Positions 4,600-57,830 of a stretch of 64,000 nt of DNA are shown in pieces. How positions within the stretch are numbered: position 1 is the first letter of the stretch; every line of letters begins with the position of its first letter. The translations under genes were made by a program, and so were the position numbers. Under the pieces are notes generated by a model, which did no database searches, was not told the origin of the DNA, and was given only the letters and a program-made list of their open reading frames with translations. The DNA comes from Monocercomonoides exilis PA203 (Eukaryota; Protista; Preaxostyla), in the NCBI GenBank assembly GCA_001643675.2, contig LSRY02000031.1:372001-436000 (forward strand), given 5' to 3'.

Positions 4600-5430
4600 T
4601 CAACTGAAACGATTCTCCACAAAGCAAAGAAAAGTCTGCAAGTTATCAACAACTGAATCAATTCTGACTTTTTCATTTGGAGGCTGAAGCATTCGAAGTG
4701 AAAAGGAAAGTACGATGAGGCTAGGTTCCAAAAATATCCATTGGGAGATTTCACAACGACAAAACATCGGTGAATTGCAGGAAATGAAAAGGAAAGGGAG
4801 AGCAATTTTGAGGAAAAGTCATGTTTGAAGGGAAGTCATATGAGATTCTGGTACTAATTGGATGCAAGCAAGTTGAAATCGGAAAGGTGAAGAAAATATA
4901 AACTGAAGAAAATTGCCTGATATATATGAATATATTTCTTTTGAAGATACGACAGCAATGAATCTTTTTTCATGAGCTTAATTTGTAGTTGATGGAGAAG
5001 AAAAATTAGATGAGGTAATGACGAAGAAATATTTTTGTTTTGTTGATATTATGGATTTCTGAAAAAAATAATGATGATATATACGTCAGTTGAAAAAGCT
5101 ATGAAAGTTCATGAATTTTTCTATGAAATGGAAAATGGTGAAAATGAGAAAATGAAGGAAAGGAAAGAACGTAAGAAAAAGTTTATCATTTCCTGTTATT
5201 TTTATATCAACTGCGCTGAAGGTGAGTGTTTGAAGAGGAACAAATGTTGAGGTGAGGAGGGTGAGGGAGGCGTCTTGAAGGAGGGAAATGAAGCCATTTA
5301 GGGCATACTCGATGGTGGCGCATGGAGTATGTTTAGGTATGCCACAGGCATAAGCATCAGTTCCATTGCTGGAAACGATTTTGTTCTCTGCTATGAGAGT
5401 GAGACAGCTGTTAGACTTCGCTTTATCCAA
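4600..5430 (-). pseudogene. Fragment of the Cys-rich/beta-helix surface protein family
   Basis: ORF 5086..5430 has IVSSNGTDAYACGIPKHTPCATIEYAL, the same CG-x(4-5)-PC module that is repeated in the 28288 protein; truncated, with no intact start or end. Confidence 0.5.
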
Positions 5431-5599
5431 TGGTTCACGATTTCGTAAAACGTTTGATGAATTCGATGAAACGAATAAAATGAATGGAAATTTGTTGGCA
5501 TAATAAAGGAAAGGGAAAAAATAGAAAAATGACTATTATTGAAAAATTGGTTTCAATAGTATTGTTTTCTTATCTTCTTTTATGTTCTTCTTTATAAAC

Positions 5600-39029: not shown

Positions 39030-41890
39030 GTGAACTCTGGGAAAATATGAACTTTCATGTTTTTTTGCACAAAAAAAATAATATGTTTCACTCACAACTT
39101 TTCTTAGCTTTCTCAGATTTTAAAATAAATAGGATTTTCACATCAATAAACATATGTCATTGATATCACAACATCATGTTTTCTTTCCTCACAGGTTTTT
39201 CAAAAAATGAACAAATTTTGTCTGGATTTTCTGATCAAAAAAAGTCAATAAAAAGTGAATAATTTTTCTTTGAAAAAGCTTGGCGTTTCATATTTTCCAT
39301 CAACTGTTCGTGATTCGTGAGGAAAAAATTCACGATTGAACAAATGTGCACATGTTTGATGATTGTCAACATGTGAGATTGTTTTTGATATATTTCCATT
39401 TTTCGGTTTATTAAATATCCAAAAAATATTCAACACTTGCCTAATTATTTTTCTTTTAAATGAAAAAAGAATCACCATTATTTCAAAATAGAAAGAACGA
39501 TAAAATTGAAGATCAAATGTGTGATAAAACATAATTTTTACTTGTCAGCATTTATTTCATAATATTCATGGCAAATATCCAAACAGAAGAATTCCACAGA
39601 ATATTTTCGAATTAAAACATAATCACTAATAAATAATTTCCCCTGTGACAACATTAGGATAAACATTAACTATACAACAATATTTTTGCGAAAAGAATGT
39701 GACATTAACGAATGGCATGGTTTTCGATGTGATTGTTTCCTTTATGCACCAAAAATAACAAAATCAAACTCATTTTTCACAAAATGTTTTTGTTGATAAA
39801 CAAAATGAGTTTGTGTTGATTAGGCATATGTTGAGGAAATTGGACAGAATTATTTTATTTGCTTCAATTAAGGAAACGAAATAGTTATATAGTGGAAAAA
39901 TATCCTTTCAAGCTTATTTTGCACAAAGCACAAAAAAAATGTTTCACTTTTTGCATCGTTAAACTTAATCAGATTTCAAAATGAATTTGATTTTCATTCA
40001 AGCAGACAAACTTTATAAAAAGTTTCACAAAAAAATTTATGACCTCACATATATTTCGAATAGAGAGTTAATGTCATTTGTGTTATCTGATCACAAAAAG
40101 TTCATCTTATGAGCATTACTTCTCAATGAAAATGCCTGAAGTCAAATATTTTGTCCCAAATGAATATGGGAAATTGTAATTGATATCAAACTTTTTCTAT
40201 CAAAAAATACGTTGAATAAAAAAATTGTTTGAAAAAAGAAAATAATTGACCAATACAAAGAAAACTCAACAAAATTGTGTTTATTTTTTTTCTCAAAAAT
40301 TGTGTTTAGCAAATATTGCTATTCAATGAGATTCTGACCACGAAATATCCAAACTGACAATAAGAACAATGCAATTATCTTCATTCCGAAAAAATGAATG
40401 ATTTCAAAAACAATCACACACATATGCAGGAGATTACAATTGAATCCTAATTTTTTCCGTGAATAATTTCTGTAAGTGAATAAACTTCAAATGTTGACAT
40501 ATGAATTCCGATGAGAAACGACCTTTTTCAAAGAAAAATTATCCTTTTATATCATCTTCAGCTTCGTCATTAAAAACGACATAGGCACATAAAACATTTG
40601 AATGAATAATTGTTTCTAAAAAGAAAGAAATCATTAAAAGGATAAACACTTCGAAAATAGTTATGATATTAAAAGATATAACGCATATATATTTGTATGA
40701 TAAATTTTGAAATCAAAACTTTTTTCTGGATGTTGATGTTTCAAAAGTTGTTCGTCTTTGACTTTTAAATTGCCATTGAGATGAAAAATGTGCAATATTT
40801 CTTTCATAAGCCAATGTTTGAGATTTGTTCATTGTTATATTTTCTTTTTGTGGGAGAATGATTTTCGGAGTTCATTTTTTCATATTCAAAGCATATTTTC
40901 TTTCAGAATTTTTTGATAGAAATAATATGATATCAATAATAATCAAACATATAATACATAGGACGAAATATTTGACTTCAGTCATTTGCATAGAAAAATG
41001 TGCACTTTTGAAAAGCTTTTCATATGGGACAAAATGTTTTGCTTCAAGCATTTTCATTGAAAAATAATGCACTTTTCATTGACTTTTTTGATCAAAAAAC
41101 ACAATAAAAATGAGTCCATTTTTTGACATTTGTGAAAAGTTGAAAAACTTTTCGTTTTGATTTCTACGATGCCTGTTCACGGATATGAAAATCAAATTTA
41201 TTCCAAAATTTGAGAAAGGGAATAAAAGTTATGAATGAATCAATTTTTTTTGTGCTTTGCGCAAAAGAAGCTTGAAAGTCCGTATTTTCCACCATTTAAA
41301 TATTAACAATTCAGAAAATAATAATTGTTATATATAAATCTGATGACTTAAAAAATATTTCATGGAATTATAAATTCAATCATTACCCCAAAAATTATTC
41401 AACATCGAAAAAGTTTTATTCATACGGGTGATTATTTTTGTAACCACATTTTTTCTTTTAACAATTTCGGTTTGAAAATTACTTTTGGGCATCAACAAAT
41501 GAACAATAAAAAGTGAACAGGCATATTCAAGACCTCTTTATTTTCATTTCGAGTCAAGCATTTGTTTTTGAAACAGTTATGATAATTTCAGTATATGGGT
41601 GATTTTTTTTGATATCATAAAAAAAGATCAAAAATCAAAAAAAATTAAATTAATAGTGGTATTTATTGATCAAAGAGTTAATTTGATTTATAACAGTATT
41701 TAGCTTTTATTTCTGTCATATATATTTGTAAAATTTATTAGAACAAAAAACAAACCTTTTTTATGTTTTTAGTGAAAAAGAAATTATTGATTATGTTTAA
41801 TAAAAACAAATAAAAAACAAATAAATGAAACTTCAAAAAGATAAATAGTCATATCATAATTGTGAAAACAAAACTTATAAAGAAAATCCA
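39030..41890. repeat. Cluster of decayed MITE-related repeats
   Basis: A ~270-bp unit at ~39039-39300 (+), ~39890-40165 (+) and ~41020-41295 (-) is collinear with 47841-48085 + 56401-56430. The TTATGAT(A/T)TCAAAAA.AATCACCCATAT-like motif recurs at ~40400, 40660, 41425 (-) and 41595 (-). Confidence 0.75.
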
Positions 41891-47557: not shown

Positions 47558-48432
47558 ACAAAAAAAACAAAAAATAAAAATACAGTTTGTGCAAAAAATA
47601 CCGGACAAGATCGATATCTCAATAACCACAAGAAGAAAAATTCTGATAATTTTCCTTAAAATACATCTCGTCAATGCAAACTCACATGTCCAACAAGACT
47701 TTTTAAATCGCATCATTCGTACTCAGAGAAAATTATTTTTTTATATTTCTGAGAAATAGGATTTCAAGTTTCTCCGAGATTTCAAAAATTATTTTTTATA
47801 TATTCAGTAGACGTGAAAATGAAAGTTTGATATGACAAATGGGGGAAAATACGAGATTTAAAGCTTTTTTTGCACGAAGCATTAAATTTTTATTTCGCTC
47901 AGAACTTCATAAAACGAACTCAGATTTTCAAGTAAATTGGATTTTCTGATCTGAATACTAACGCAATTGACATTGCAACATTATATTTTATTACCTCACC
48001 CGTTTAAATTAAAATGAACCCATTTTGTTGATAATTTCTATTCAAAAAAATTTAAACCAAAAATGCAAAATTTTTAAATGAAAATTAACCCTGGGTGACG
48101 TACTGACTTCTGACGTGAAGTTTTCGAATTTTGACGGACGTGACAATAATTTTCACGTCACAAAGCAAAACCAACATAATTGTTTTATTATTTCATTAAT
48201 GCAAATACAGTTTGTGCAAAAAATACCGGACATCGCAAAAAATACCGGACAAAAAATTTTATAATGGAAAGATAAATTTTCTATCGATTGAAAAAATAAT
48301 AAAATTTTGTGTTGATGAAACGAAATAATTTCTTTTTTTGTTTATTTCCAAAAAATTTTTTTTATTTTCCAAATTTTAAAAATATGGGTTTATTTTTTCA
48401 CATTGGACCTGAAGCAGCACAGTCAAAGCACT

Positions 48433-50361
48433 ATGGAGGAAGATTCAAGCGAAAGTGGAAGTTTATTGCTTCAAAAATCAAAAATTTTGGAGAAATTAAC
48501 TGAAAATCTCGATCATGATATGGCAATTAGAATATTTACTGAATTGGAATCGCTAAACCCGGAAAATATTCCAATCATGCTGAAATATTTACAAGAGTTG
48601 CTTTTTAGATATTATCCGAAATACTCAACGTCCAGAGGATTACAATTGTTTGTTAATTTCAAAAAATCAAGAATAGATGAATTAATTAAGATGGCAGATA
48701 AAGAATTGAAAGAAAGAGGAAGACCTTGTGCTATGTCAAAAGAAAAGGAGGAGGAGCTGATAAACCTTTGTATTGATAAATATCATCAAGGAAATCCTTT
48801 TACAATATCATCTTTACAGACTTACATCAATTTGACTTATAATTTAAATATTTCTTACTCCTTTGTTCGACATTTTCTGTTCACTCATTGCGACAAATTG
48901 AAGAAAAGAACAGCAAGACCCATTGAATTGAAGAGAAAAAATGTCAAACAATCACAAGGAAAAAAATATGTGATAGAATTGCAAAAAGTTCTAAATAATG
49001 TTGAACCACAATTTGTTTTCTGCATGGATGAAACTGGGATACAAGAATATGTAGATGCAAAAAAAAAGAAAGTCATTTGCCCAAAAGAAGTCGATGATAA
49101 GAATGTGACATACACAGTTGTTAGAGATGGGAAACTGGTCACATTGATTGGGTGCATTCCTCTTATTGGTCCTTCAGTTGTTCCTATGCTTATAATAAAA
49201 ACTGCTACTGTTCAATCTTTAATATTTGGAGATTTAATTGATGGAGTGGATGTTGTTATCAAAAACTCATCCAAGGGTTACTGTACTTCACAAATCTTTT
49301 TAGAATGGCTTCATATTTGTTTTATTCCGCATATTAATAGGCTGAAGGATGAACCAAACAAAAAAACGGTTCTTATTGCAGACGGGTTTAAAGCACATTC
49401 AAGCGACGAAGCTCTTCGTGTTATGGAATTAAACAAGATATGTATTATTTTTATTCCACCGCATTCTTCACATTTATTTCCACCGTTGGATTTGGTCACA
49501 TTCTCAAATCTGAAAAATAATTTAAAAAAGTTGCGATCTTTATTCCCATCAAGGCAGCAGGCGCATGTCCTTGCCGGTATTGTTAAAAGCTATCAATTAT
49601 GTACAATTCCATTCACAAACAGATCAGCATTTCGCAGAGCAGGAATCACATTGAAAAATGAAGATGGAAAGCAAAAAGTTATAGTGGATCAGTTTCGAAT
49701 GGCTCAACATATAGAAATAATGTCTAAGGACGAAAATCCATTTCAGTCAATAAAAGATAAAAAAGATGAAAATGAAGAGATCAAGAAACAAGATGAAGAA
49801 AAGAAAGATAATAATGAAGATGAAAAAGGAGATGAAAAAGAAGAAAAGAAAGATGAAGAAAAGAAAGATGAAGAAAAGAAAGATGAAGAAAACGAAGAAG
49901 AAATGAAATTTTGGAAGGAATGGATACATGATCATCCAGCATATGTTGTTGAAATGTTACTAAAAAAGAGAGATAAGATTCAAAAACGAGTGAAAGATTT
50001 GGAGAAAATTAACAAAAGAAATTGCATTTCAAAAAAAGAAATAGAAAAAGATTCATCACAAGAGGAGGATGATGATGAATGTATTTTTCGTGTGAAAAGA
50101 AAAAAGAAAGCTGATTCTTCTGATAGTTATATTAAAGGATTGAGAACAAAGCATTTCAAAAAGTCAGAAAGTGATTCAGATAATGTTCAAATAAAAAAAC
50201 AAATTCGAAGAACGAGATCTGTAAAAACGCAGAAGAGAATAAATATGTACAGTTATGATGATTCTTTTTCTGAATCAAGCAGTTTTTATGATAGATCCAC
50301 AACTGTGAATAGTGAAGACTCCTCGGTTGAATATTCTCCTTCTTCCTTAGAACATGAATAA
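48433..50361 (+). CDS. pogo/CENP-B-type DD35D transposase (~642 aa)
   Basis: First ATG at 48433; RGRP + HTH region; CMDETG, IADGFKAH and PPHSSHLFPPLD (35-aa spacing); charged C-terminal tail. Confidence 0.92.
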   Translation: MEEDSSESGSLLLQKSKILEKLTENLDHDMAIRIFTELESLNPENIPIMLKYLQELLFRYYPKYSTSRGLQLFVNFKKSRIDELIKMADKELKERGRPCAMSKEKEEELINLCIDKYHQGNPFTISSLQTYINLTYNLNISYSFVRHFLFTHCDKLKKRTARPIELKRKNVKQSQGKKYVIELQKVLNNVEPQFVFCMDETGIQEYVDAKKKKVICPKEVDDKNVTYTVVRDGKLVTLIGCIPLIGPSVVPMLIIKTATVQSLIFGDLIDGVDVVIKNSSKGYCTSQIFLEWLHICFIPHINRLKDEPNKKTVLIADGFKAHSSDEALRVMELNKICIIFIPPHSSHLFPPLDLVTFSNLKNNLKKLRSLFPSRQQAHVLAGIVKSYQLCTIPFTNRSAFRRAGITLKNEDGKQKVIVDQFRMAQHIEIMSKDENPFQSIKDKKDENEEIKKQDEEKKDNNEDEKGDEKEEKKDEEKKDEEKKDEENEEEMKFWKEWIHDHPAYVVEMLLKKRDKIQKRVKDLEKINKRNCISKKEIEKDSSQEEDDDECIFRVKRKKKADSSDSYIKGLRTKHFKKSESDSDNVQIKKQIRRTRSVKTQKRINMYSYDDSFSESSSFYDRSTTVNSEDSSVEYSPSSLEHE

Positions 50362-50649
50362 AGCAACACAAGCTGCTGTCTTCAAAAAATTTTTTCTTTC
50401 GAATATCAAACACTTCAAATAAAGAACACAATCAAATTTTTCTGTTCAATTGTTTTTTCAGTTAAATAATATTCATTGTTATATTTTATTCTTTTCTTTT
50501 ACATATTTTTAACAATTTCAAACTTGTTCGATTATTAATTAAAGTTAAAAGAAAAAAGTTCGAGTCTTATACACACAACGAAACTTTTTATCTGAAAGAA
50601 TCATGAAAGAAATACGTTTTCCAGTGAATATGTTTGTTTCAACAATCTT

Positions 50650-51400
50650 TTGTTTTTCAATTTTTCTCGAAAAATGTGAATGGATTTAGACTTCCCAACC
50701 TCAACAGCCCATCCACTTCCCTCTCAACCTTTAACACTTCTTTCCTCCGCCAAGCACACTCTTCTGAAAATGCTTCTGAAAAACATGTTGGAACAGAAGC
50801 CGACAGAAAGAAACCAGGAAGACAAACTGCATTTTATATGAACAGTCATCGCTTTGAATGGTGCGAATGGAACGATTCAAAGGGTGGAAATGATTATGGA
50901 GGTGCACTAAAAGTTAACTGCACAAACGAAAATTTCTCAATCTCTTTTTGTTCATTTGCGTTCGTTCAACTGCAGCTGTATGAAATGGAGGATGGTTGTT
51001 TGTCAACGACTTTGTTTAACATAAACTTCACGAAGTCCAAAATGATTATCTCCTCTTCGCAACATAGTTGATCAACAGATTTATGGACTTTCCAATCTGA
51101 TTCATATTGAATGTTTCCGCAAAACAAAATTGAATGTTTTTCATAAACAAATCATTTAAGAAATATTTGGAATAAAAAGATTGATGAAATGAACCAAACC
51201 TCGTGTTCTTGTATCCCAAATTCTTCTTCATTGCAAATGCTGGTTGTAAATCTCCTGGATCATAAAATTTGCTTATTCTCGGTATTTCATACCAAGAATA
51301 TTTTCATTAGGATGAATACAGGAACATATACGATTATTTATGAAATTCATCAACATCTAAAGGTGGCACTGGGCTGCGTTGAACAAAAACCTTCGCGCAA
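50650..51400 (+). pseudogene. Captured fragment of a beta-helix surface-protein gene
   Basis: FNTSF...GRQTAF..HRFEWCEWNDSKGGNDYGGALKVNCTNENFSISFCSF resembles TH.NAEWIGCNASCGGALYVHDNSSATLTVENSSF of the 28288 protein; frameshifted further on. Confidence 0.55.
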
Positions 51401-54400
51401 TTGAGCAGAACAGAATTCCGTTCGTTTTTCTTCATTGGAAAAAATCAAGCACATTGCAAAACAAAGAGAAAGAAAAAGAAAAAAATTCTTCAAACGTGGA
51501 TGATAATTGACATATCCTTCATTGGAGAAGCAGCGACCAAGAAGAAAAACAATTACGTCCATCCTGATTAAATGAAGAAAAACTGAAAAACTGACATGAA
51601 TAATTAGATAATTAATTATTGGAAAACATCGCTTTCGCAAACACTCAATAATGATGTAACAAACGTTGAGTTCGTGGTTGGATTTTTGTTTCATAAGAAT
51701 TCAGCAAATAATCAGCATTGAGATTTTATTTTGTTCTTGTGAATTACAGAAACTTGAAAATAGATAAAATATCTGAAGGAGATACTCTTGAAATTAGTCA
51801 CAATCTTTGTCTGCTGATATTGAGCAAGCTGATATACATAATTGACTACACTTTAGAATTCATTTCATTTATCGATTCAAAGAACGAAAGAAAAACAAAT
51901 AGCAAATGTTTGCTTAGATAATATTAATAGTTTGAAACACACACACTCAAAACAAGAACAGCACATTTAAAGCTTCTGGATTTTCCCTGCACTTGAATCT
52001 TCAAATTCGTTTTATGTTTGCTCAGAACGCATCATTATTATGCTCTTCCAAATAGATAAAAGATTATTCTTTTCTCATGAACGTTCTTATCCAATTGTTT
52101 CTTGTATTTTAAAATTTAATATAATATTGTTGACCAGTGCTTTAACAAAACAAAAAAGTGAGATAATAATCTCTTTTGTGAGAAAAAGATTGATAAACTT
52201 TTTATTCAGTTATTGTTGAAACTAATAATGTTTATAATTTCGCATTGGTTAATTTTTTTGAAATAATTCTATGTTTTTTTGAATGTGATGTCAGATAACA
52301 TTTCGATAAAAAAGAGATAAAGATGTAAGGACAAAGGATTTTGAATTTTGTTAAAAGGTGAAAAATGTGAATAAGAAATAACATTTATTTAATATTTTAT
52401 TATATTTCTTGATATTTGATTTATGGTCCAATTGATCTTCACGAATCATGAAATGTGTTAATTTGCATTATTTCAATTTGGAAGAAAAAACGATAAAGAA
52501 CAGTCAAATGAATACATAGAAGGTTTGAAATTTGGATTGTTTTGTTATAATAACTGTTTCTTTTTGTCAATTGTGACACTTTGATTATTATTTCTAAAAA
52601 GCAAAAAGATGATCACTTCAAATTAATGTTTTCATAGTATTTGAGAAATTTTTAAAAGTTTGCAATACATACTCAAATGAAAATTATTATTTGTTTATTT
52701 TTCATTTTTTGTTAATCACAGTTATTTTAGGTTGTTGATCTTGTTCAATTTCAATGCGATCAATGTTCTTTTGATTGTTCAAAATTATATTCATTGCATA
52801 TTTTCTTGATGAAGTTGCTTTTGAACATATGATCCTTTCATTTTCGAAGTCTTTTTATTGATATCAGGAAGGATTGATTTTTTAATATTTTTGTTGAATA
52901 TCAAGTTGTAAGTTTTATTATTATGAGTACAAATGTGAATATACACATTTTTACTTGGACATTTTGCATTATTCGCATAATTATCTGTTTTAAGTTCTTG
53001 TTTCATTTCATTATCATAATAGAAAAATTATTTGATTTATCAATATTTAACTTGTATATTTTTGGATCAGGAATTTTTGAGTCACAATAATAAACAAAAA
53101 AGCAATTTAAAGATGAATTCATGAATAAGGAAATGAAAGGAAACAAAAATTGTTCTATGGTTTTCAATCAAAAGAAACTTATCTGAAATGAAAATATATA
53201 TGATTGTTGACTTTGAATATATAATAATATGCAGGTTCTTTTTTCAAAAATTGAAAGATTTTCAAAACCCTTAATAGTTAATGTTGTCCGGTATTTTTTG
53301 CGATGTCCGGTATTTTTTACACAAACTGTAATGTCAAATAATATTTTTTTTGAAAATTGTGAAAATCTAATTAACTATAATGAATTTTTCACTGACTTGC
53401 AAGCGGCAATGGGATTTTTGACACGTCACAAAAGTCACTGACGTCATTGACGTAACTTCCTGTCATCTATTTGAAAAAGTCAAAAGAATGAGCAAAAGAA
53501 TAAATTAAAAAATAAATATCAAAAGAAAGTCTCGTTTTTTTATTCTGATTCAACAACCATAAAATTTTCATATTAATTTCGATAATGAAACTATTTTTAT
53601 AAAAGAAACAATGACAAATCTGTAAAATCTTCTTCAACATACAATTTATCGTTTTTCACAATAACGCAAAAATTGGAATAAGAATATTGACTTGGTTTGA
53701 ATTATACAAAATATTTTTTTTGATTTAAAATTTTATTTGGAAAAATTCATTTTCAAAATGTTTAAAGATCTGGCTTGGAGTATATATGTCATCAATGTTA
53801 TCATTTGAAAATTCTGATCCATTTCAAATTACACCGCTTTACCACAGATGAATGTATTTCATCAAAGTATTGAAAAGCATAACACATATAAAAAAATGTT
53901 GATAACATATTTTCCTTTGATAATCTGCAAAGCAACACTCGCAGATCAGCAATGAGATGTTTGAACTGACATATGTAAAAACTCAGATTGATCAAAATTG
54001 TTGTTTGCAAAACATAAGTTTGATGATTTGAATGAGATAAAGGATTTTCACAAGAAACATTTCAATCCATTTTAATTTTAAACATTTTGAATATTTTTAT
54101 ATTTATCTTTCGGACAAATTGCAATTTATTTTCCCATCAGCATAGATATTTTTCTCCACATTTGTAGAATAGGTTTTTTTTTCATATTCTTTCATAACTT
54201 TTTATCATCAACTTTTATTTTTTTCGATCAGGTTTTATCCTATACCAATAACTCTCTTCTGAAGTTGTTTGAAATTTCAGTTATTGATGCGAAATAAATG
54301 AGGAGGTGAGATGAACACAAACTTGAAAAAGAAAAGAAGAAGATAACTCTTGAAATGACGAGAAAACGAGATATTATCCATTTTTTAACTAAAACTGACA

Positions 54401-54849
54401 TGCAGATAAGTTTTTGGAAGAAGATTTTTGCAGAAAAAATTCTAAAAATAGAAACATATAAAGGATTTGTCTATATTTTTCGATACACATTATTTTGGAA
54501 AAGCAAATTATTGACTGAACAGAATAGAAAAAGGCTTGAAAAGATTCCTTGTTTTCTATTTTGTGAAATAAAAAAAGTTTGAGTTCAAAATGAAAAATTT
54601 ATCTATTTATCACTTTTTAATAAAATGGTCAATAATAACAAACTTAAAATCAAAACCATCAATTTTTTTAATAATCAAGAATTTCATGAAACATAATGAT
54701 AACATCTTTAAATTTTTCTTTTTCATTATTTTTTAATATTTCCTTTTGGCTTTTTCCATTTCATAATCTGTATTTTCACATAATCTTCAAAAAAGTTTCA
54801 AAAAGAAATACAAACAATTCAATTCATTAACGTACAATTTTGTTATTTA

Positions 54850-55920
54850 GTGTTTATTATTGTGGTTTTTTAAAAACAGTGTCAGCCGAGCAACTCTTAA
54901 ACAAGTCTTCAACTTCAAAAGCTCTGCTATCCACAGTATTTCTCTGGGAATAAATGCATATGTAACTAATAACTCGGTGATCATCCTTCGCAACTCGAAA
55001 TACCTGAAAAACGCTGCAAATAAATCCAACTGATTCTTCATTCAACAATTTGCAATCGTGAAAAAATGCTCCAGAGTTTGGATCCATCTCATAATTATAA
55101 ACACTTCTTTTTCTCATTTCTCTCCTTTCCCCTCTTGTTTTTTCTTCCAATCCACACATCTTGTCAACTGTTCTAATTCTCTTGCTGCTTCTCTAGCAAA
55201 ATGCAGTTCATTCACGATTATGTCTTCCAAAGATCTGTCACAGGATAATCTGTTGATCAAAAACTCCCAAGCAGACTGACATGCAAGTTGTGTTAGATTG
55301 TGATGTTCCTGATGAAACAGGATAATCTCTTTGATTTCATTCTAACACAGTTCTTGCCTAAAAAACTAATTAGAAATTAGAAAATAACAACAATATCAAA
55401 AGGAAATAATAATGTTCATACATAAAATTTGATGTTGCTCAACGCAAGCAACGTCACTTCCGCTTCTTTTTGAGCTTCTTCGTTTTCCTCTTACCAAAAT
55501 GCAGCTTTTATAAAGCAAGGCACAATGATTGATATCAATTCATTAGGATTTTCTTATCATTCAGCAAAGCAAAACATTCACATAGATTGGTTAAATGCTT
55601 TTCATCTTTTTTCTTCTCATATTCATCAATTATCATCTCTTTCATTCTTTCGCTCAATGAAGAAAACCCAAAGCCTAAAACCCTCATATCTTACAAAACA
55701 ATGCAATATCCAACATGCTTCAACATAAAAATCGCATTTCCCATCGATAGTTTCTATTCTTTAATCATTTCATCCGTTTCATCGAACCATTTTTTTGCGA
55801 AGACAGATTTGAATTCTTCTTCATTCATTTCATCAATTATTTCATTCATTTCCTCCATTTTCTTTCTCTGTCCACCTTCATTGAAATGCTCCAATTCGCA
55901 AAACAATTCTTCAAAAAGAA
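54850..55920 (-). pseudogene. Captured copy of an expanded helical-repeat host gene family
   Basis: Manual translation gives LFCELEHFNEGGQRKKMEEMNEIIDEMNEEEFKSVF...LKHVGYC...EENEEAQKEAEVTLLALSNI, an intron (~55421-55360), then EIKEIILFHQEHHNLTQLACQSAWEFLINRL...ELHFAREAARELEQL, with several stops. Recalled as a large oxymonad hypothetical-protein family. Confidence 0.7.
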
Positions 55921-56739
55921 AAATAAATAATCAATGCAATAATCATGAAATACAAAATATCGACAGACACACTGAGATATTTTTTGATCAAATTCAATTT
56001 ATTTGTATTTTGAAATTGTCATTTCAATGAAACAGCACAATGTTTGTTGATCTTATTGAACAAACAAAAAATGAAAAGAAAATATTTTAAATGCTATTCA
56101 AACAAACAATATTCTAAACAATTTCAAAATTCACACAATTCCGTAAAGAAAATTGCATATTTCTTCGAATAATATAAAAAAAAACTTGCATTGTTATTTG
56201 AATCATGTTGTAATGGGATCTCATGATCATTCATTTAAAATCTCATAAATACTTTCTGAATGAACATTTTTTATAATAAAAATATTTCTGTTGTTCTTTT
56301 CCATTGAAAGCTTTTTTTTTTTTTTTTTTTTTTGTGAGTGGAAAACTGGTGACGGACATGACGGTGTTTTTTCTTCACGTCGCCCTGGCTTAATGAAAAT
56401 GCCTGAAGTGAAATATTTCGCCCCAAATAAGTTAGTATTGTTAAGATAGATTTGAAGGAAAATTATCAGAATTTTTCTTCTTGCGGTTATTGAGAAATCG
56501 ATCTTGTCCGGTATTTTTTGCACAAACTGTACATACAAAAAAATATTTCTATTGGATGAAATTTGAATAGGACATTTTAAATTGAATAAAGTCAGATCAT
56601 TCGAAAAAAAACTTTTTATTCACATTTCATCCATTGATTCACGATTAATGAGATCTGAACTATTGAATGAAACAACTATAAAATTACGGAGTCTTAAAAA
56701 ATAGAGTATCTCAGTTAATATTAGACACAACGTTATATT

Positions 56740-57830
56740 TCCATTTAGTTTATATCCACAAATCAAAAGTCACACATCAATTAGTGTTATAATTTTATAT
56801 TGACCTTTTTTCTTTATCTTGACCTTTTTCTTTTTTGTTATGCTTTCGGCTATACACAAGCCTGAGATAAATAAAAAATAACCTGAAATGTTTGAAATGT
56901 TTTAATTTCCTTGTTCTATATTTTTTTTTCAATATTTCTAGTTTTATAAAAAGATCGAGGATTATAATAATTTTTTGTTTTGATCATTGACTTGCTGCTT
57001 TTCCAGCGAATATTTTTTATAAGAAGTTTTAAGTTTTCATATCATAATGCATTGTTTCTTTTTTATAAGTTTAACTTGTTTTAAACTTTCTCAACTTGTT
57101 TTTTTATCATTTTTTCTCATTTCACACATATATTCAAAAAACACGATTTTAAGGACAAATATGAATTTGTTTTGAAATTTATTGAAATGACAAATAAACA
57201 TTATTAAAATAAAACGATTCTTGTATGTTTAGATGATTATTTGTTTGTATATGTTTGGTAATTAAAATAACAAAAAAATCATATGTACTTGCTTTTTTGT
57301 TAATATTCTTGAAAAGTTCCTTTTCATTTCAAAACTGAATACAAATAAACGATAATTAAGACTTTATTTATTTTTTTCGTTTTTATAAAATTTGACACAA
57401 ACACTTGTTTATAAAAAAAATCGTGTTTTAAGCAAAAATAGTGAAATGAGAAAAAAAGGTCAAAAATTAAATTGAAAATGTTAAAAACAAGTTAAAATAA
57501 TAAAATAGGAATGTGAAATTATGATGCTGTAGATTAAAACGTTCCGTATGAAATATTCGCTTCACAGCCAGCAAGTCTTTGATCTGGGTCCTAAAATAAT
57601 ACAAATTTTTGTTATTTTTTTATTCATAATAATTTCAAAAATTTTTTCAACAGAATTCTGAAAAACAAAAATATCAAGAAGTCTATTTATTTTGTTTTAT
57701 TTTTAAGCCTTTTAACAAATCAAAAAAGCAAAAATAAGTTTCAAAAAAATAGGGTTGAGATAAAAAATTGAGGTCAAGATAAAATATGCACCCTATCAAT
57801 GATTTTTCAATTCAAACGGAAAATAATAAT
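56740..57830. repeat. Old degenerate foldback (inverted repeat) element
   Basis: 56982 GATCATTGACTTGCTG..AGCGAATATTT pairs with ~57551-57584; 57110 TTTTTCTCATTTCAC..AAAACACGATTTT pairs with ~57417-57455; TTTATCTTGACCT (~56813) pairs with ~57771-57783. Centre ~57280. Confidence 0.65.

Follow-up and report, generated by a model that had tools for sequence, protein, structure and literature searches.

Four DNA transposons lie stacked one within another in the genome of Monocercomonoides exilis, at positions 47583-56529 of the window (the whole 64,000-nucleotide stretch of DNA that was analysed), in a repeat-rich, AT-rich intergenic setting; features are on the + strand unless stated otherwise. 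We consider it very probable that this nest passively records four cut-and-paste insertions, made one after another, and that, as far as can be seen, it has never moved as a unit. A preliminary description had proposed a nest of three layers; the nesting stands, but the layers number four, an element that we call the R2 MITE having been overlooked. In the proposed order of events, a 359-bp pogo-type MITE would have inserted at a TA; the R2 MITE would have inserted into it, duplicating AAAT; a ~3.2-kb non-autonomous element, probably hAT-type and carrying a decayed copy of a helical-family gene, would have entered R2, duplicating ATGAAAAT; and finally a 5.1-kb autonomous pogo would have inserted at a TA located 122 bp into this middle element. 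Each element would have been moved by the transposase of its own family. The nest is taken to be real because layers 2-4 each have a target-site duplication, together with an ‘empty site’ at another locus, where the element that was entered is uninterrupted; for the outer MITE there are the TA flanks only.

The TA target-site duplication of the outermost layer is read directly, at 47581-47582 on the left and 56530-56531 on the right. Its left part (47583-47840) is colinear with canonical copies of the family and includes the AAAT at 47837-47840 that was duplicated by R2; its right part (56425-56529) begins with the second AAAT (56425-56428), and closes with 25 nt that repeat 47583-47607 exactly in inverted orientation. 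When R2 is taken out, the MITE is 359 bp long (47583-47840 plus 56429-56529), has arms of ~100 nt that are 90% complementary, and is colinear with canonical copies such as L017 and L028 across the excision point. An outer MITE of ~630 bp had been reported earlier; its pogo-type ends at 47583 and 56529 and its TA flanks are confirmed, but it is not a single element, being composed of the 359-bp MITE and the ~276-bp R2. A few MITE matches reach into the right end of R2 (56393-56424), and this stretch was considered as a part of the pogo-type MITE; since a multiple alignment showed the MITE to be complete and colinear without it, these matches reflect weak chance similarity.

Genome-wide, the 25-mer end of the pogo-type family has 226 matches with at most two mismatches (58 exact), as compared with none for the control, well in excess of chance. 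The outer element is short, non-coding, almost fully palindromic and TA-flanked, and belongs to a family of more than 100 copies whose common ground with the autonomous pogo is the terminal ~25 nt only. In its ends, its TA, its copy number and its lack of coding sequence, it is a MITE derived from the pogo family. These features, and its length of 359 bp, liken it to Stowaway-like and other Tc1/mariner-derived MITEs; unlike those, the M. exilis family has members of 358, 378 and 396 bp, three size classes that are distinguished by the presence, at each end, of a 19-nt tandem copy of an internal motif. MITEs with one copy of the internal 16-nt motif, as in the outer ends here, are present in many copies with exact ends, and such single-motif ends are presumably usable. 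The flanks of the two pogo-type ends that were compared are both rich in A-runs and T-runs, which may reflect a target preference.

The R2 layer extends over 47841-56424 and is ~276 bp long without its insert. It has inverted ends of its own (GGGGGAAAATA... and ...TTTTGCCCC) and is bounded by the 4-bp AAAT duplication located above; other R2 copies have duplicated ATAT (L002 and L003) or AACT (a copy on C38). The left part (47841-48085), delimited by uninterrupted copies elsewhere, ends with the ATGAAAAT at 48078-48085 that was duplicated by the middle element; the right part (56393-56424), which is read directly and has paralogs, begins with the second ATGAAAAT (56393-56400). Uninterrupted full-length copies with 85-93% identity, two of them on C17 and one each on C46 and C9, cross the insertion point of the middle element. 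Among the best 40 of 479 candidates, which were those scored, there were 35 more copies at 70-75% identity, nearly all of them starting from query base 1. A diverged R2 copy also lies within the window itself, at ~39870-40155, with the corresponding site uninterrupted at ~40125.

The 8-bp duplication flanks the third layer (48086-56392), as had been described, although the direct host of this element is R2 and not the pogo-type MITE. The element is in two pieces, 122 bp on the left (48086-48207), with a 16-nt end that is repeated genome-wide, and 3062 bp on the right (53331-56392), which has copies on other contigs and terminates in ...GCCCTGGCTTA. The 16-nt end was found 67 times in forward and 67 times in reverse orientation, 134 in total, as against 1 + 2 = 3 for the control, again far more than by chance, and such ends are common to about 67 elements. 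Copies are located on C38 (92-95% identity), C68 (76%), C8 (77%), C29 and C10, and another on C80 has an 8-bp duplication of its own, ATAAAAAT. The copies on C38 and C91 (~1.94 Mb) are uninterrupted across the TA and are the empty sites for pogo.

An 8-bp target-site duplication and short inverted repeats, both found here, are features of the hAT superfamily, and the middle element is probably a non-autonomous element of hAT type. Merlin elements likewise give 8-bp duplications, and more than 100 copies in at least seven families have been reported in M. exilis (PMC8101967); in our searches there were at least 150 DDE_Tnp_IS1595 matches, one of them on C31, between two middle-type ends that form a 5.2-kb pair. 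Nevertheless, with 575 Merlin candidates genome-wide, one such coincidence is expected by chance, and according to the published description Merlin ends begin with GG (PMC8101967), whereas those of the middle element begin with TAA or TAG. Furthermore, open frames with matches to the hAT dimerisation domain lie between the members of two long pairs of middle-type ends, one of 924 aa at C2:1489118-1498137 and one of 900 aa at C8:56422-68675, an association by coordinates only in which a foreign nested hAT is possible. A Merlin-type element is thus a rather unlikely alternative to the hAT-type assignment. A piggyBac-type element, with TTAA flanks and CCC...GGG ends, was also considered and rejected: the left end reads TTAA-CCC here, but CTAA or ATAA is present in other copies, and the empty sites are in keeping with a duplication of 8 bp.

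Inserted in this probable hAT-type element is a pogo of 5121 bp (48208-53328), flanked by TA at 48206-48207 and 53329-53330. The preliminary description had it as a 5.1-kb element with 45-bp terminal inverted repeats and an open DD35D transposase, and both points hold. One mismatch separates the two 45-nt repeats, and the transposase gene (48433-50361; 642 codons plus stop) encodes a DDE_1 domain (PF03184; E = 4.7e-20, 72 bits against a cut-off of 22), with the second catalytic Asp separated from the third by 35 residues in the translation. Where pogo transposases have a CENP-B/psq-type helix-turn-helix DNA-binding domain, at the N-terminus, a profile search gave a weak HTH_32 match, which was under the cut-off (E = 0.015). 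The TA target, the short inverted repeats with a repeated internal motif, the single DDE_1 transposase and the 35-residue spacing are those of pogo/Tigger-type elements of Tc1/mariner; the M. exilis elements differ in their length (5.1-6.1 kb), in a non-coding 3′ region of 3-4 kb that includes an old surface-gene fragment, and in the weakness of the N-terminal match.

Five open copies of the transposase gene are present in the genome, along with broken ones. All four of the other open copies keep the three catalytic residues, and comparison with these gives dN/dS values of 0.16-0.22, indicating that the gene family is under purifying selection. The nearest database proteins outside M. exilis are at most 32% identical to the transposase, and an exact-protein look-up found no identical protein on record in other assemblies. 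A sibling pogo on C7 is 92-96% identical and has other TA flanks, while the copies on C91 and C5, nearly identical to one another (dS 0.019), are of a sister lineage; this near identity and the dN/dS values are indirect signs of transposition. Comparison of the terminal 25 nt with the MITE family showed 2-4 differing positions in the other open pogo copies and three in the C7 sibling. The inner pogo, which by its sequence looks functional, is the only intact copy found with an end that exactly matches this abundant family, and we infer for this reason that it is the best candidate for the source of the enzyme that moves the MITEs.

Both the pogo and the middle element hold pieces of host genes, as the preliminary description had noted. 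In the pogo 3′ region, a fragment at 50676-51224, corresponding to ~185 of roughly 940 codons, is homologous to the central portion of genes of a large surface-protein family; tblastn against proteins of 770-940 aa from loci on C25 and C2 gave 45-47% identity over ~189 aa, and 65% over the first 87. The same segment is colinear ~430 bp past the transposase stop in pogo copies on C91, C5 (two) and C63; it is an old cargo that all pogo lineages have in common. Within the middle element, on the - strand at 54718-55506, is a stop-ridden copy of a ‘helical’ gene family of ~260-300 aa; by tblastn, open frames in L041 and L042 match it at 40-43% identity over 216-269 aa. This copy is split into short frames and is also found in other copies of the element. 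No significant Pfam domains were found in the proteins of either family. The further suggestion that such carriage is a route by which these families spread is weak, the pieces being partial or stop-ridden and most checkable genomic copies of both families lying outside such elements. Retention of the same piece in copies of each carrier is as in Pack-MULE-like transduplication, but the carriers here are pogo and a probable hAT-type element, not Mutator-like ones, and the pieces are incomplete or decayed.

The nest had also been proposed to be a self-mobilising composite of up to 8.9 kb, and the geometry on which this was based is as described. The outer and left inner ends are identical over 25 bp (47583-47607 and 48208-48232), the terminal 25-mers being identical at 47583, 48208 and 56529, with one mismatch at the right pogo end (53328). 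On paper only, each of the left ends (47583, 48208) could be paired with each of the right ends (53328, 56529), which makes four possible end pairs; the ends are compatibly oriented and have between them a transposase gene that is apparently intact, and ends of one family in the correct orientation therefore surround other DNA and a source of transposase. The extra compatible ends would give the inner pogo a theoretical capacity for alternative-end transposition, of which the genome shows no realised case. It is very doubtful that the inner pogo, on C27, is a live driver of the MITEs that occasionally uses its far end together with an outer MITE end, carrying the intervening elements and gene fragments; if true, this would be a Tc1/mariner-superfamily counterpart, in a protist, of maize Ac/Ds macrotransposition.

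For the nest to be a functional composite (macro)transposon, the inner transposase would have to pair an outer MITE end with the inner or outer opposite end and move 5.7-8.9 kb, including gene fragments. The orientation and near identity of the four ends, the open and conserved transposase, the abundance of exact-end MITEs with a single motif and presumably usable ends, the C7 sibling as a sign that the 5.1-kb unit of the pogo family has moved at least once, and the maize Ac/Ds precedent (PMC3260210; PMC4270019) are all in keeping with this. Nevertheless, when junction-spanning queries were run against the 82-Mb assembly of one genome, with the best 40 candidates per query scored, none of the six internal junctions was found elsewhere. 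A badly decayed composite could escape such scoring, but a copy spanning a junction should outrank half-matches. Matches crossing a junction by 13-41 bases (C2:1489072, C15:749354, C30, C37 and C24) were rejected, the extension being A/T-rich flank only; that at C2:1489072 belongs to another middle-type element, of which it is the left end. For every layer, the nearest copies are solitary and have unrelated flanks: they are on C38 and C91 (~1.94 Mb) for the middle element, on C7 for pogo, and on C46, C17 and C9 for R2. The activity of the transposase is a prediction.

We consider such a functional composite most improbable, and its self-mobilisation is not supported. The preliminary description had itself held that a lack of independent composite or hybrid-ended copies would reduce the structure to a one-off passive nest; the genome search revealed neither these nor a further locus in which the internal junctions recur between other flanks. 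We conclude that this is an ordinary passive nest rather than a working composite transposon because there is no sign of movement as a unit. The absence of copies does not show an inability to move, and polymorphic or somatic movement of a composite would be invisible because a single genome was examined.

Nesting is routine in the M. exilis genome: the C38 copy of the middle element has its own R2 inside, that on C68 contains an unrelated 632-bp MITE, and the C7 pogo contains three insertions. All four families are independently repetitive, as judged by the pogo-type ends, R2, the middle-element ends and the pogo transposase copies. It is scarcely credible that the nest is an artefact in which a long-read assembler joined unrelated repeat copies, for although the assembly was made from ONT reads with Canu (read N50 8.9 kb) in a genome with 46% repeats, 35% of these ‘unclassified’ (PMC8767320), it was polished with Illumina reads, and a false join would neither give four perfectly matched duplications (TA, AAAT, ATGAAAAT, TA) nor leave interrupted elements whose two halves, put back together, are colinear with intact paralogs. 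It is these duplications and the empty sites that argue for the assembly across the nest.

Like bacterial composite transposons, in which two IS copies flank cargo, the passive nest has unrelated DNA bracketed by ends of the same family; in contrast, what forms the bracket here is one MITE that insertions have split, together with a single autonomous element inside, and there is neither a sign of unit movement nor a selectable cargo. The closer parallel in arrangement is maize, where an autonomous Ac near a non-autonomous Ds, with ends that can be paired across the intervening DNA, formed a macrotransposon that mobilised up to 100 kb (PMC3260210). Movement was observed there, whereas here, in another superfamily and with no second copy, it is a geometric possibility only. 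Because nesting is routine in this genome, and because composite mobilisation, even if it occurs, has a well-studied precedent in maize Ac/Ds, the idea is not new in kind and opens no new mechanism. For M. exilis, the analysis gives the exact ends and the duplications of four transposon families, namely pogo and its MITEs, an abundant MITE with 4-bp duplications, and a non-autonomous family, probably of hAT type, with about 67 members, which helps to annotate the repeats of this genome; it also adds two cases of gene-fragment capture and points to one pogo transposase as a candidate for an active enzyme.

The inverted and direct repeats listed in the preliminary description were all recovered at their positions when the window was compared for repeats. 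The outer MITE arms (47581–47682 and 56430–56531) are 90% complementary over 102 nt, while the inverted repeats of the pogo element (48208–48252 and 53284–53328) pair over 45 nt with one mismatch; both elements have TA on both sides. The middle element, from 48086 to 56392, is bracketed by two copies of ATGAAAAT. One and the same 25-mer starts at 47583 and at 48208 and, inverted, ends at 56529; at its right end, pogo departs from this shared 25-mer by a single base.

The nesting stands as described, although three layers prove to be four. Searching the genome assembly (82,301,135 bases, 101 contigs) with 47583–48085 gave two distinct sets of matches: query bases 1 to 215 or 259 matched the arms of pogo-type MITEs, often in inverted pairs ~360–400 bp apart, and bases 250–503 matched a different repeat, R2. 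R2 elements, MITEs of ~276 bp that make a 4-bp A/T-rich duplication, form an abundant family. The copy in the nest occupies 47841–48085 and 56393–56424, opening with GGGGGAAAATA at 47841 and closing with TTTTGCCCC at 56424, between copies of AAAT (47837–47840 and 56425–56428); the duplication is ATAT at other copies and AACT for the R2 inside the C38 middle element. An R2-only query returned 479 first-look candidates, and 35 of the 39 other scored matches start at query base 1. Without R2 the outer MITE is 359 bp long and, in a multiple alignment, colinear with canonical copies straight through the excision point. Because R2 has separate ends and its own duplication, and the 359-bp MITE is colinear without it, the nest has four layers, and what had been taken for a single ~630-bp MITE is a pogo-type MITE interrupted by the overlooked R2.

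For each layer except the outermost, the flanking duplications match and the host element has an uninterrupted paralog elsewhere. Outer-MITE copies lacking R2 are present in the genome; R2 copies on contigs C46, C17 (two) and C9, and a further, diverged R2 in the window (about 39870–40155), run uninterrupted through the ATGAAAAT site, at about 40125 in the window copy; and middle-element copies on C38 (92–95% identical) and C91 (~1.94 Mb) run uninterrupted through the TA of pogo. Neither the duplications nor the uninterrupted paralogs would arise from repeats being wrongly joined, so misassembly is a very unlikely source of the nest.

The preliminary description also proposed that the whole structure could mobilize itself as a composite, and took an independent copy of the composite or of a hybrid-ended form as its own criterion. 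The idea is already established for maize Ac/Ds, where a macrotransposon bounded by Ds on one side and Ac on the other mobilized up to 100 kb (PMC3260210); alternative transposition, in which the ends used come from two neighbouring elements, is also well described (PMC4270019). Queries covering or abutting all six internal junctions (47583–48085, 48000–48300, the whole pogo, 53230–53430, 53331–56392 and 56300–56560) found no second copy of any junction genome-wide among the best 40 candidates scored per query, the window alone giving a full match. The next-best matches were confined to a single side of a junction, a few overrunning it by 13–41 bases, solely into A/T-rich flank; since a true copy would outrank such half-matches, a hidden second copy among unscored candidates is unlikely. 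By that criterion the locus is a one-off nest, and self-mobilization of the whole is without support in the genome searches. Immediately to its right lies an inverted repeat of ~214 nt (56982–57194 and 57373–57584, 71% identity), which may be another palindromic MITE.

The pogo copy in the nest is probably active. Its transposase frame (48433–50361, 642 aa) carries a DDE_1 domain (E = 4.7e-20) with DD35D spacing. Five open copies of the transposase occur in the genome (one on C27, whose positions 372001–436000 make up the window, one on C91, two on C5 and one on C63), plus several broken ones; pairwise dN/dS among the five is 0.16–0.22, and the three catalytic Asp residues are conserved in all. 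Nearby right ends imply an element length of ~6.0–6.1 kb for the other open copies. The C91 transposase is almost identical to one C5 copy (dN 0, dS 0.019), so this sister lineage, with 6.1-kb copies at C91:994972–1001102 and C5:572026–578155, would have moved recently; the near-identical pair suggests very recent transposition or duplication. The nearest relative of the C27 pogo, a C7 copy (92–96%; C7:1679604–1699718), is a distinct insertion of the 5.1-kb unit, with TA on both sides and broken by stops and three insertions (about 256 bp, 226 bp and 14.5 kb). Some 280 bp past the right end of this sibling there is a diverged pogo-type MITE.

The exact 25-mer is found at 58 genomic places, and at 226 with up to two mismatches, against none for the reversed control; among the matches listed, opposite-strand pairs are spaced mostly 358, 378 or 396 bp apart. 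This 25-mer is mismatched at 2–4 positions in each of the four remaining open pogo copies and at 3 in the C7 sibling, leaving the C27 pogo as the sole intact copy found with an end equal to the MITE ends. We infer that the C27 pogo lineage is the enzyme source for the MITE family. The left flank of the outer MITE (47559–47582) and the right flank of pogo (53331–53352) are A-run and T-run sequences complementary to each other (82% across 49 nt, counting the ends), which hints at a preferred target that is AT-rich and roughly palindromic around TA.

The middle element is likelier to belong to the hAT superfamily than to Merlin. Its 16-nt end has 67 matches per strand genome-wide (1 and 2 for the control), in pairs typically 2.8–3.5 kb apart, and no transposase frame was found in the copies examined. 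Merlin elements are abundant in M. exilis and also make 8-bp duplications (PMC8101967). Open hAT-type frames lie inside two long end pairs (924 aa on C2 and 900 aa on C8), and together with the 8-bp duplication and the TAA/TAG ends they favour hAT. Inverted ends TAGATATTTTACG bound a 632-bp insertion in the C68 middle-element copy (869–1500 of locus L033); it lies 28 bp from the pogo site of the window copy and is unrelated to the four families of the nest.

On sequence comparison, the nest holds two examples of gene-fragment capture. Within pogo, 50676–51224 (+) matches the middle of 770–940 aa surface-family proteins (45–47% identity over ~189 aa). The pogo copies on C91, C5 and C63 have the segment too, colinear and ~430 bp 3′ of the transposase stop; two keep its frame open for ~165 aa, whereas in the rest it is stop-filled. 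Being common to these pogo copies, the segment is an old capture carried along with the family rather than a recent pick-up. The same surface family is matched elsewhere in the window at 5158–5493 (−; 51–63% identity over 100–113 aa). The middle element carries a stop-ridden helical-family copy (54718–55506, −; source gene 260–300 aa), common to the C38, C68, C8, C29 and C10 middle elements. When the ~35 other genomic matches to the helical gene are set against the listed element ends (contigs up to C41), most have none close by, so transfer went from host gene into element. Pfam searches gave no significant domain in the proteins of either family.

The ONT assembly of PA203 was reported as 46% repeats, with 35% of the genome ‘unclassified’ and 4.5% DNA transposons, and the names pogo, MITE, Tc1 and hAT are absent from that paper (PMC8767320). 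We conclude from the sequence comparisons that the nest is genuine and well defined: its four layers are elements of known kinds, and the protist genome that holds them is poorly annotated.
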